From: Ministeria vibrans ATCC 50519
Taxonomy: Eukaryota; Protista; Filasterea
Length of the DNA stretch: 58,157 bases
Assembly (NCBI GenBank): GCA_943704425.1
Contig: CALSCP010001726.1
Coordinates: 1 to 58,157, forward strand
Direction of reading: 5' to 3'
The notes under the pieces were generated by a model that saw only the letters and a program-made list of their open reading frames with translations, was not told the origin of the DNA and searched no databases. The position numbers were made by a program, and so were the translations under genes. Positions 46,127 to 51,080 of the stretch are shown here, in pieces. Within the stretch, counting starts at the first letter, position 1; every line of letters begins with the position of its first letter.

Positions 46127-48234
46127 TTACAAGGCCAAAACAGAGAGAGACGACCCAACAGCTTTGGCATAGAGATAGCCTAAGAGATGAGTGACAAAGA
46201 GCAAAAGGGACGTCCAGAAGAGGGCATAGTTCAGGAGGGCCTTGGTGACGAGTGCGGCGAGATGAGCTGCATCTGCTGACTGGGCTGGGGCAAACATTGT
46301 CGAGGGGGCACTCACTGCACTCCATCTAAGCAATTCAAAGGGGGGTGAGAGTGCGTCAGTATGTGTGTGCATGTGTTCAATTGAGTATGAATCTGATGGA
46401 CTGTGACAGAAAAAAAATGCGTTGAATAACATAATGGAGATTCATGTGATGAAAGATTCATTTTAGTCAGTGTTTTCACAATCACATGAATACAATAAAG
46501 AACAATCCAAAGTCAGTGTACCTTAATTGAGAATTCATTTTAAGGCTGATCGCAATGCTCAACAAAAGAGAGATAGAGCCAATATATTGAATGCCAACGA
46601 CAAACATATAGAGCATAATTGAAGAAATCTACTTATAAAAAGTGAATTGTGAGTGATTTTTGAAATACGGTTCTTTTGATCGGAAAAGTTACTCTTGATC
46701 GGAGTTTTGCAGTGTAGATTCTCCCTTTTGACTGTTGGATCACTTTTAATCGACGAAAAGCCGTATTAAAATACCCTGAAAAACCAAAGAATAATAATTA
46801 TTATTATTGTTATTATTATTATTACTAACCTTGAGAGTAGTCTTTGAAAAGAGCAAAACGTAAGAGCGCAAAAAGAAGAACAAAAACAGTGCGAAATTGA
46901 GTTTGAGAGTCGAAATCAAACCCATAGTGATTCTCAATGAGACTCACAATTGGTTTGAGATACGAAACGCAAATAAAAAGCGGGAACAGAAAGTTCAAAT
47001 GCAAAAGAAACCTATAAAAAAACGTACGCAAATTTTACGACTCAGTAGATAATACTAAGTAGATTACTGTTTGAAAGAGTTCGTTTGAGGGGAACTGAGA
47101 GCGGAAAGATACGAATCGCCAAAACGGATTCCGGGAAAAGTGAGAATAGTTCCCAAGAGACCAGAAGAAATCGCAATGTAGAGCTAAGTAGAGAGATTGG
47201 TTGGTTAAGGAAAAGTGATTGTTATGCCATCGAAGAGAGAAAAACAAAGTGATAGAGGGAGAAACAAGCAACGGAGAGGGAGAAGCATATGATGAAGAGA
47301 AGGAGAGAGAAGAAAGAAGCAAGTGATGAAGAGAATTAAGAGAGGAAAAAAAAAGAAGTCTGTTTGAGACAAGTGATTAAAAACACAATCACTGTCGCAA
47401 TACCCATTACCCTTTTAACGTCTTCGTACCTTATAGCGAACAAAGGAAGAGGGAACAAGAGAGAGCAAAAATGAGTCAGAATCGACAAGAGAGGACAAAC
47501 GGACGCGCGAGACATTGAGAAGAGTTTCAAGGGCCGCATCGAGTTGAAACGTGAAGAGAGATTCGTTTTGGATGAGAATGGCAGTGGAGAGAAGGAAACA
47601 CGTGAAGCCCGTGACAAACGCAATTGCAAACTCATAACTGAGCACAGTGTAACTAAAGTGGGCTATTAGTGTTTTTTTCTTCTTCTGAATTGTGTCGTTT
47701 GTTTTGATTACTTGAAGAGCACTGAGAGGAGAGAGACAAGAGAGAAAATGGTAACGGCGGCTGCTGCGTAACCCGCAAAGGCCAATTGGGAGTGAGGATC
47801 CGAGGCAAAAAAGCGAAAGTAGAGTTCGGTGAGAGCAAAGTTGACAGTAACAATGAGAGTCGCGTGCAAAAGATAGTCGAATGGAGTGTGCATGGGCAGA
47901 CGCGCCAGACCCCTGTCAGTACACAAAAAGAAGAATGAGAGTGAGTGTGTGGCATGATGATGGTGGTGGTGTTGTCAAACCGTCCTCAACGTCAAANNNN
48001 NNNNNNGGGGGGGGGGGGGGATGAGGAGGAGGAGGAGGAGGAGGAAGGTTACGGGTCGTTTCGGGCGATCATGCTGGGGGCGAGTGTGACTGGCGCACTG
48101 CACGGGATGGTCGGGTGGTCGGGCGCCTCCTCGTGTGCCAGCGCCGCCCTGGTGCCTGTGGACGGATGGCAAGCAGAGACACAGTTGAAGAAAGGGTGTG
48201 CAGAGGCGAGCAGTGGAAGCGAGAGAGAGAACAG

Positions 48235-48268
<34 letters not shown>

Positions 48269-48532
48269 CGTGCTTAGTGCAAAATGACTGATCATGCTCT
48301 CACCTTGATTTCGGCGTCGTCTGGACGAACCAGCGAGAACGGAGTTTGCCGAGACAGACACGCCATTTGTGCCGCCTGAACCAACCATCTCACGCAGCTC
48401 GGCATCCTCGGGAACAAGGTGGAAGACGAGTCCGGCGAAGAGACGACAATGCGCGTCAATGAAACGATGCAGACGCGCCACTACAAAGCTAGTGATCACC
48501 AACAGGGTGAGTTGGACTCCAAGAAGAGCCAT
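46127..48532 (-). CDS. TMEM161: TMEM161 family membrane protein, multi-exon; N gap lies in an intron
   Basis: MALLGVQLTLLVI...PEDAELREMVG, LGTILTFPGIRFG, FLLHLNFLFPLFI, VVGIQY, C-terminal LLNYALFWT...LLGYLY. Confidence 0.85.
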
Positions 48533-48822: not shown

Positions 48823-49408
48823 ATGGGTGTTGAAAGAGTTGAAACGGCCAAGGCATGCATGCGCTTCCACATTGTGATGGGTCTGCTTCAAATGCTCGTT
48901 TGTTGTGTGTTTTGCTTCTCGGGCGATCACGCCGTCGTTGCCAAGGCGTTTACCGGCGCGCACCACCAGGTAGGATGATGCAAGTGGAAGCTAGATCGGC
49001 CCTCTTTGAAGCAAGCAAACAACGGCTTGTAGTTTGCGCACAACGGCGAATTCGAGTTGGTGTTGGCCTTTGTCTTTCCGCACGCATTGGGGCTCTCCTC
49101 GTTCACGCTGAAGCTCGCCAGCCTGCTGGTGCTTGTAGGCACCTGGTCTAATCCCATTGCGTACTGTTTCATTGCCTTTTCTGGCCACCATTCGGATATA
49201 ATGGCCAAAACCTTTCCCGACTTGAAGGTAAACACACAATACAAATTGGCGCATTTCACACAATTTTTTAATCATCCTTTTCTTCCAGCCTGGCCCATAC
49301 GGCACGGCAGCCGACATGACGCTGACTGTGTGTGCCATCACCATGATTTCAGCGATCCTCTTGCTGATCAGCGGCTCTCTACGCCATCCCAAAGTGAAAG
49401 TGCAATAA
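48823..49408 (+). CDS. Styrene oxide isomerase (StyC)-like 4-TM putative heme protein, 3 exons, 153 aa
   Basis: Exons 48823-48969, 49033-49227 and 49289-49408 with phase-0 GT-AG introns give MGVERVETAKACMRFHIVMGLLQMLVCCVFCFSGDHAVVAKAFTGAHHQFAHNGEFELVLAFVFPHALGLSSFTLKLASLLVLVGTWSNPIAYCFIAFSGHHSDIMAKTFPDLKPGPYGTAADMTLTVCAITMISAILLLISGSLRHPKVKVQ*. The AHxxxxxNG and WSNxxxY motifs match StyC. Confidence 0.72.
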
Positions 49409-49639
49409 TAGTATTGATGATTGGGCTCAGCTTCACACGCAGCGTGCCGCAGCGCCACTTGGAGCAAAAAATAGTGAGTAATTAATAATGCAGATAGCAG
49501 CATGTGTCAACAGAGACTGGCTAAGGATTTGGGGTTCAGAATTCAGATCATTTTGAGTGAATAATACTAATAATCGAATAAAGTGATTAATCATTAATAA
49601 CACACGTTTTCTTGTTCGTTCACTCCTCACATTTGCACC

Positions 49640-51080
49640 ATGTTACGAAGACAGGCGCGCGAGCGTCGCGAGTATTTGTATCGAAAGGCTTTGGAAGAAC
49701 AGTAATATAAAAAAGGGAATCGTTTTCACGTGTACGGACAATGGCGATGCTAAACATGCATGCGTTGCGGCGACCACCTAGGGACCGCGCCACCCAGTCA
49801 CGGAAGCGCAAGTTGAAGGACGCCCTCGAAGACGGGAAGCAGATACCGCAAGGTAAAGCATTTGCGCTGAAGACAGTCGCGCCGTTTTGCGCCTCTGCTC
49901 GCCTTCCAGGCGGTCTGCGGCGCCTCTCGTGCCGACGTGCAGTAAAAAGATGTGCTCACCAGCCCGCCATGGCGCCCTGTAGAGCTTCGTGAGGACGCAG
50001 TGAAGTTACATCGCGAAATCGAACTTGACGACGATCTGACGGCGGAGCTTAAGACGCACGAGGACGACGAGTACGCGCACGCCGGCACGCGCGACCCGAA
50101 GATCATGATCACCACAAGGTACAGGGGGTGCTCAGCAAAGAGAGTCGTGTAAGGTTTGACGTGTCGTCGTTTCGTCTGTGCAGTCGTGATCCCTCGTCCA
50201 AACTCAAGCAGTTCACTAAGGAGTTTAAACTGCTCTTTCCCAACGCACAACGAATGAACCGCGGCGGAACAATCGTCAAAGAGGTACACACAACTAAAGA
50301 TGCTGAAGAAGAAGAAGAAGAAGAAGAAAAAGACAAACCTTTTGGCAACTGTGACTGATTGTGCAATTGAGTTGTAGCTGGTTGAGGCTTGTCGCACCAA
50401 CGACGTCACAGACCTCCTGATTCTCAGCGAGCACCGAGGACAGCCCGACGGGCTGATCGTGTGCCATCTTCCGCATGGCCCCACCGCCTACTTTACACTC
50501 GCCAATGTCGTCATGCGTCATGATGTGCCTCAGATGCAGCGATCGACTGTCTCCGAGGCCTTTCCTCACCTGATTTTTGATAACTTTTCCACAAAGTTGG
50601 GTGAGCGCATGCGCAACATTTTAAGGTGAGCGGAAAACATTGCGTGCTCATTGCGTGTCTATTTTGTGTGCGTGCCTGTCTGTGGGTTTGTCCGTGTCTG
50701 AGTGTGCTTTGTGTGTGTGCCAAGTGCTTGTTTGACTGAGTGTTTTGGGTTTAGGTATTTGTATCCGGTTCCACGAGAGGACACTTCACGTGTGATGACT
50801 TATGCGAATGAGGGGGATTACATCTCGTTTCGCCATCATACGTTTGTGAAGAAGGGAAAGGATGTGGAGTTGACGGAGGTTGGGCCGCGCTTTGAGATGA
50901 GACCCTATCAGGTGAGACTACCCTAATGTTAAGACGACGTGTCGTTCAAACCCTAACCGCAATGGCCACTCGCAGATCCTCTTGGGCACTCTGGACATGG
51001 CTGACACGTGTGATCGCGAGTGGGTCCACCGTCCATACATGCACACTGCATTTAAGCGTCAACACTTGTCCGACAAGTAA
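49640..51080 (+). CDS. IMP4: U3 snoRNP protein IMP4 (Brix domain)
   Basis: [73 protein letters not shown]. Confidence 0.96.

Follow-up and report, generated by a model that had tools for sequence, protein, structure and literature searches.

The window analysed here, the whole stretch of 58,157 nucleotides of Ministeria vibrans DNA, carries a three-exon gene for a protein of 153 amino acids (49 + 65 + 39 residues) that resembles styrene oxide isomerase (SOI, StyC) of bacteria. The features of the gene are collected in Table 1. Its coordinates are as given in the earlier note, which had proposed three exons and two canonical phase-0 introns, and the exons tile the family profile in order. Since read-through into intron 1 leads to an in-frame TGA after two codons and the 61-nt intron 2 would cause a frameshift, the gene needs splicing for its expression. 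An antisense ORF (48991–49503) overlaps the gene; the conserved frame is that of the sense strand. The sequence AATAAA at 49577–49582, ~170 nt past the stop codon, is a candidate polyadenylation signal.

Table 1. Features of the SOI-like gene (positions in the window; residues named as "SOI" follow Pseudomonas numbering)
Feature	Position	Strand	Description
Exon 1	48823..48969	+	49 aa; predicted cytosolic N-terminus, TM1, short luminal loop, TM2 start; ends A-H-H-Q
His47 codon	48961..48963	+	counterpart of Pseudomonas SOI haem axial ligand His58
Intron 1	48970..49032	+	63 nt, GT..AG, phase 0
Exon 2	49033..49227	+	65 aa; remaining TM2, TM3, beginning of luminal loop 2; Asn64/Asn99/Tyr103 equivalents
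Asn53 codon	49042..49044	+	equivalent of SOI Asn64; same six-residue distance from the His as in StyC
G-T-W-S-N-P-I-A-Y	49138..49164	+	Gly at Asp95 position, then Trp97, Asn99, Tyr103 equivalents
Asn99 equivalent (Asn89)	49150-49152	+	within G-T-W-S-N-P-I-A-Y
Tyr103 equivalent (Tyr93)	49162-49164	+	within G-T-W-S-N-P-I-A-Y
Intron 2	49228..49288	+	61 nt, GT..AG, phase 0; variable TM3-TM4 loop
Exon 3	49289..49408	+	39 aa + stop; loop 2 end, TM4, predicted cytosolic tail
K-V-K-V-Q	49391..49405	+	C-terminal; Lys at -3 and -5; KxKxx dilysine pattern

Downstream of the SOI-like gene, a multi-exon Brix (IMP4-like) gene occupies 49641–50926 on the plus strand and starts ~230 nt past the SOI-like stop. 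Its introns are short (~77 nt) and similar in length to those of the SOI-like gene. A Sir2 gene is located ~3 kb upstream. The minus-strand ORF upstream of the SOI-like gene (47975–48532) had no Pfam match. This ORF contains a His-Thr dipeptide repeat and enters an N stretch (X in the translation), suggesting an assembly gap just upstream. As had been noticed before, styA, styB and styD are absent next to the gene, their place being taken by the Brix/IMP4-like gene, the Pfam-blank ORF and the Sir2 gene. A StyA-type (substrate-binding) domain was not found in the whole genome, with control genomes also blank in the same search.

The three exons were compared one by one with databases and profiles, and structural information was taken from a relative, P0002. 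When aligned by hhalign to a profile of 11 eukaryotic relatives, exon 1 covered columns 49–91 (E 2.3e-13), exon 2 columns 92–153 (E 3.9e-21) and exon 3 columns 152–185 (E 2.9e-5; HMM positions 106–140). The exon order is collinear with the family profile, all clade-invariant residues are kept and the frame is intact. Junction 1 falls exactly within an invariant H-H-Q/F-A-H-N-G-E stretch, through which intronless relatives run on unbroken. The end of exon 2 and the start of exon 3 correspond to adjoining profile positions, and the placement of intron 2 is weaker than that of intron 1. An exon-wise profile search of the 29.7 Mb genome revealed this locus (exon 1, E 1e-7; exon 2, E 1.4e-17) as the only one of its kind. 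We conclude from these alignments that the locus is a real spliced nuclear gene.

Sequence similarity to SOI was detected by several comparisons. The best PDB match of exon 2 was the SOI structure 8PNU (E 0.0045), with Asn64, Trp97, Asn99 and Tyr103 (SOI numbering) aligned. The eukaryotic profile also had two SOI entries among its PDB matches, 8PNU (E 0.015) and one other. The NCBIfam StyC model matched exon 2 weakly (E 0.048, 13.7 bits) and 6 of the 11 relatives, with a best E of 5.3e-7. Both exon 2 and the best relative are far under the 150-bit cut-off of the StyC equivalog NF045734; with 13.7 bits against 150, the SOI-like protein is not a StyC orthologue. Every relative bears a precomputed Pfam PF26512 'SOI' tag, which is also assigned to a genuine StyC encoded in an Alloalcanivorax operon of the order styA-styB-SOI-porin-StyS/StyR (two-component). 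The Pfam set used in our own scans was one without PF26512, and with this set neither the three exons nor any of the relatives gave a meaningful match. Bacterial StyC genes for comparison were collected by motif. Comparison of the eukaryotic and bacterial profiles with hhalign gave an E of 1.6e-5, with His58, Asn64, Asn99 and Tyr103 in register, and in whole StyC-bearing bacterial genomes the StyC locus was the top match of the eukaryotic profile. The window protein is ~20% identical to StyC and 29–42% identical to other eukaryotic members. No match was obtained in a word search with exon 2 (through the open frame 49033–49482) or in a loose first-pass search of the whole genome with the NCBIfam StyC model, and an Atlas search by exon 2 alone told us nothing, all scores being below 0.9. 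Two further matches were discarded: MprA GlyGly-CTERM on exon 3 (E 0.012, under the cut-off) as a hydrophobic-helix artefact, and the repeat protein P0007, which came from the large exon 2 search, as low-complexity noise. The earlier note had described the gene as an intron-containing eukaryotic homologue of StyC. The match to 8PNU, the NCBIfam StyC model, the PF26512-tagged relatives and the agreement between profiles bear this description out, and, judged by sequence, the window protein is a remote but true SOI/StyC homologue and, by way of its tagged relatives, probably a divergent eukaryotic member of the PF26512 family.

Four hydrophobic segments had been proposed for the protein. Hydrophobic segments are present in each of the three exons, and the AlphaFold (AF2) model of P0002, which is ~38% identical to the window exons, consists of four long helices (pLDDT 90.9). 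A Foldseek search with this model ranked 8pnu_A first with TM 0.74/0.71, the next match having a TM of 0.43. A superposition on StyC, which the earlier note had suggested, was made with the P0002 monomer model and 8PNU, and VIA aligned the two with Z 13.8 and an rmsd of 2.5 A over 133 residues. Thus, the P0002 model has the four-TM-helix fold of 8PNU, the 38%-identical relative serving here as a stand-in for the window protein. Since generic four-helix membrane bundles reach Z 10–12.5 in VIA, little below the Z 13.8 of 8PNU, the fold alone would not decide homology. The Atlas model of the homologous Capsaspora protein had a TM of 0.85 to a bacterial SOI cluster.

His58 is the axial haem ligand of SOI, and the H58A mutant is colourless, without haem and inactive. 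Activity is likewise lost in N99A and Y103A and impaired in N64A and in D95A, in the latter substantially; Asn64, Asn99 and Tyr103 form a network that positions the substrate, Asp95 belongs to network 1, and Arg112 is thought to hold a haem propionate (PMC11374702; PMC12502698). The StyC motifs and their numbering had been given correctly in the earlier note (Pseudomonas putida StyC; PMC11374702). Its claim of an intact haem and catalytic pattern stands in part. His47, Asn53, Asn89 and Tyr93 of the window protein correspond to SOI His58, Asn64, Asn99 and Tyr103 with identical spacing, but Asp95, Arg112 and Glu52 are not conserved. The position of Asp95 is occupied by Gly in the window protein and in all clade members except P0017, which has Ala. 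The Arg112 position is His in the window protein and variable across the clade; loop 1 is ~14 residues shorter than in SOI, and Glu52 belongs to the deleted part. In a mixed alignment of eukaryotic and bacterial sequences, His58, Pro76, Leu78, Trp97, Asn99 and Tyr103 were the sole invariant columns, and the Asn64 position is Gln in two members of the clade.

Comparison with SOI of Pseudomonas sp. VLB120 (8PNU/8PNV; NF045734; PF26512) summarizes these relations. The two proteins are of about equal size and have a common four-helix fold, His58 with Asn64 six residues later, Pro76, the W-x-N-x-x-x-Y motif of TM3 and a predicted cytoplasmic location of both termini. Unlike VLB120 SOI, the window protein has Gly for Asp95 and Thr for Gly96, lacks Arg112 and Glu52 along with ~14 residues of loop 1, has additional His, Gln, His and Glu residues in TM2 and is only ~20% identical overall; its gene is eukaryotic and spliced, stands outside any sty operon and encodes a dilysine tail.

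The polar residues of TM2 (His59, Gln60, His63 and Glu66 in SOI numbering) are kept throughout the clade, whereas bacteria have Gly-Pro and hydrophobic residues there; an H-H-Q-x-x-H-N-G-E sequence, invariant only in eukaryotes, stands in place of bacterial x-G-P-x-x-N-G-M. In the window this part of TM2 is encoded by 48964–48969 and 49033–49050, and by helical periodicity positions 59, 63 and 66 lie on one face. The face formed by His59, His63 and Glu66 could serve as a site for a metal or for protons, or could provide a sixth haem ligand, and the gained polar residues could also alter the pocket.

An exhaustive search with exon 2 among 1.84 billion representatives identified eight true relatives (E 5e-9 to 3e-4). 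They comprise Capsaspora owczarzaki CAOG_08839, a transcript of Paulinella chromatophora and proteins on metagenomic contigs of uncultured eukaryotes, where the neighbouring genes include ArfGAP, eIF4E, NGP1, Vps54 and PIF1. Few others came to light in a further profile search and in a scan of metagenomes. With about a dozen distinct sequences recovered from very large collections, the eukaryotic SOI-like clade is rare. The gene had been presented earlier as a bacterial-family gene domesticated as an ER haem enzyme; family membership holds, but the case is not a lone one, as the dozen eukaryotic relatives, CAOG_08839 among them, make clear.

CAOG_08839 (XP_011270480, UniProt A0A0D2UGR7) belongs to one clade with the window protein, with equal motifs, F-P-D-L in loop 2, Lys at −3 and ~37% identity. 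It differs in having Gln-Ala where the window protein has Asn-Gly (the Asn64-Gly65 position) and in its tail, D-K-T-K, which is neither KKxx nor KxKxx. The Capsaspora gene (L026:5001-5869) contains one intron instead of two. This 374-nt phase 2 intron interrupts the Gln codon of H-H-Q and is thus 1 nt away from the phase 0 intron 1 of the window gene. The near coincidence may reflect either an old common intron that has slid or independent gain at a CAG|G site. Two metagenomic relatives (L017:136-752 and L023:3010-3524) have introns elsewhere, in the loop that follows TM3 (loop 2), and two others (L002 and L022) are intronless and reside on gene-dense contigs of ~60% GC. The clade members are established eukaryotic genes.

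The family as a whole is mainly bacterial, with 427 matches, nearly all of StyC type; non-StyC Atlas clusters with the SOI domain also come from Myxococcota, Acidobacteriota and Cyanobacteriota, and all of the nearest clusters are bacterial. Two of 401 sampled Pseudomonadota encode a 152-aa protein that matched the eukaryotic profile (E 5.4e-8) better than it matched StyC (E 0.006), and StyC itself scores lower against the eukaryotic profile than this protein. With the clade these uncharacterised proteins share the short loop 1, the six-residue spacing of His and Asn-Gly and a Gly-Thr that precedes the Asn of TM3; they differ from it in replacing Trp97 by Tyr and Tyr103 by Thr (G-T-Y-T-N in TM3) and in having no dilysine tail. 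They had no match in Pfam (the set without PF26512) or NCBIfam, and may represent a bridge group of the SOI superfamily. Their loci (L033:1456-1911:-, L034 and also L035:6708-7166:-) encode four-helix proteins, and the neighbourhood holds an adjacent, divergent TetR regulator gene and no further functional clue. The small and patchy eukaryotic branch is compatible with either an old transfer from bacteria or loss. A sequence from Euglypha rotunda in EukProt (P0023), considered as a second eukaryotic SOI type, was dropped. It has the long loop 1 and the D-G-W-S-N-V-G-F-Y motif of proteobacterial StyC, being a typical sequence of that kind, and is probably a bacterial carry-over.

Both the N- and C-termini of bacterial SOI are cytosolic (PMC12502698). 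The charge distribution of the window protein, counted per exon, fits the positive-inside rule with both termini on the cytosolic side. The C-terminal KVKVQ had been interpreted as a KxKxx retrieval signal; with Lys at −3 and −5 and a C-terminus predicted to be cytosolic, the tail does conform to the pattern of dilysine (KKxx/KxKxx) COPI-retrieval proteins. Among the ten eukaryotic members with a complete tail, nine have Lys at −3 and six the canonical dilysine pattern; several members thus differ from canonical dilysine proteins in having Lys at −3 only. Bacterial SOI tails are without the Lys at −3. The positive-inside rule by itself is also expected to produce lysine-rich cytosolic tails. 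From the KxKxx tail, retrieval to the ER is a reasonable inference.

The explanation that we consider best, and probable on the whole, is that the gene encodes a divergent four-helix protein of the SOI family, which would form a haem b-containing trimer, be retained in the ER and rearrange epoxides or other oxygenated lipids. By homology to SOI, the 153-aa protein most likely assembles as a trimer and most likely binds one haem b per subunit interface through His47. On its open side the haem would be flanked by Asn53, Asn89 and Tyr93, and a lipophilic, oxygen-containing substrate would bind there. With both termini in the cytosol, the KxKxx tail would direct COPI retrieval to the ER or early Golgi, and the haem site would then lie within the luminal leaflet. 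As for the chemistry, it is most likely that the ferric haem would act as a Lewis acid and rearrange an epoxide or an oxygenated lipid of a related kind; styrene catabolism is not the role that we propose. Asp95, Arg112 and Glu52 are not kept, which we counted against this reading.

These same substitutions favour a different function on the same fold. The protein may bind haem without being an isomerase, the His/Gln/His/Glu residues of TM2 either furnishing a sixth ligand, which would make it a small electron carrier like cytochrome b or an ER membrane protein that handles haem, or supporting another reaction. We regard this as unlikely but deserving of serious weight. Loss of Asp95 together with that of Arg112 and Glu52, the exclusively eukaryotic H-H-Q-x-x-H-N-G-E in place of the bacterial x-G-P-x-x-N-G-M, and the lack of an epoxide-forming partner nearby or of a StyA-type domain in the genome search (where the controls were blank too) all point in this direction. 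So does the bacterial sister group that is nearer to the eukaryotic profile and has neither Trp97 nor Tyr103; the fold thus serves beyond StyC chemistry. However, no eukaryotic member deviates at Asn99 or Tyr103, residues that position the substrate rather than bind haem and whose replacement by alanine abolishes activity, and a closed or unused distal site would hardly explain this invariance.

The other alternatives fare much worse. That the ORFs fell together by chance, or belong to a pseudogene in decay, is very improbable: intron 2 does lie in a poorly conserved loop, but the three exons match the family in order (E 3e-5 to 4e-21), the frame is intact and every residue invariant in the clade is present. 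An origin by contamination with bacterial DNA, or by transfer from bacteria in very recent times, is scarcely credible. It would accord with a family that is overwhelmingly bacterial (427 matches) and with the bacterial origin of the nearest Atlas clusters, but the gene has two spliceosomal-type introns and intron-bearing eukaryotic neighbours, its identity to StyC is ~20%, and its dozen or so eukaryotic relatives reside on contigs with ArfGAP, eIF4E, NGP1, Vps54 or PIF1, some with introns of their own. No relative was found on viral contigs, and the eukaryotic signature motifs led to no confirmed relative among 185,579 prokaryotic species genomes, a result that in effect excludes contamination and recent transfer. 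Kinship with MAPEG-like trimeric ER enzymes (of the LTC4 synthase, MGST or mPGES-1 type) instead of SOI has equally little to recommend it, for although MAPEG structures are also four-helix ER trimers and align to the P0002 model at Z 9.4–10.4, MAPEG gives no sequence signal in Pfam or PDB searches, a Foldseek TM of 0.43 and identities of 8–15% compared to 21% for SOI, to which all sequence evidence leads.

Returning to the reading as a divergent SOI-family protein of the ER, a stronger form of it can be put forward only tentatively, and we think it rather doubtful. The protein would be the first eukaryotic haem-dependent isomerase of Meinwald type, converting endogenous lipid or sterol epoxides to carbonyls in the luminal leaflet of the ER, or would perform new haem chemistry by means of its His-His-Glu face. 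On the isomerase side of this proposal, a rare ER-resident enzyme would have survived in filastereans and a handful of other protists. No enzyme other than SOI is known to carry out the Meinwald rearrangement with a ferric haem that serves solely as Lewis acid. Until now SOI has been regarded as a peculiarity of styrene degradation by bacteria and as a tool for biocatalysis. If our interpretation is true, the SOI fold with its haem site also serves in the membranes of eukaryotes, among close unicellular relatives of animals. The clade would supply new natural variants of SOI, with Asp95 replaced by Gly, polar residues in TM2 and a shortened loop 1, and its very patchy distribution would be a case study of ancient transfer versus massive loss. 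A literature search turned up no publication about SOI homologues in eukaryotes; what is already known is the automated Pfam PF26512 tag on the Capsaspora protein.
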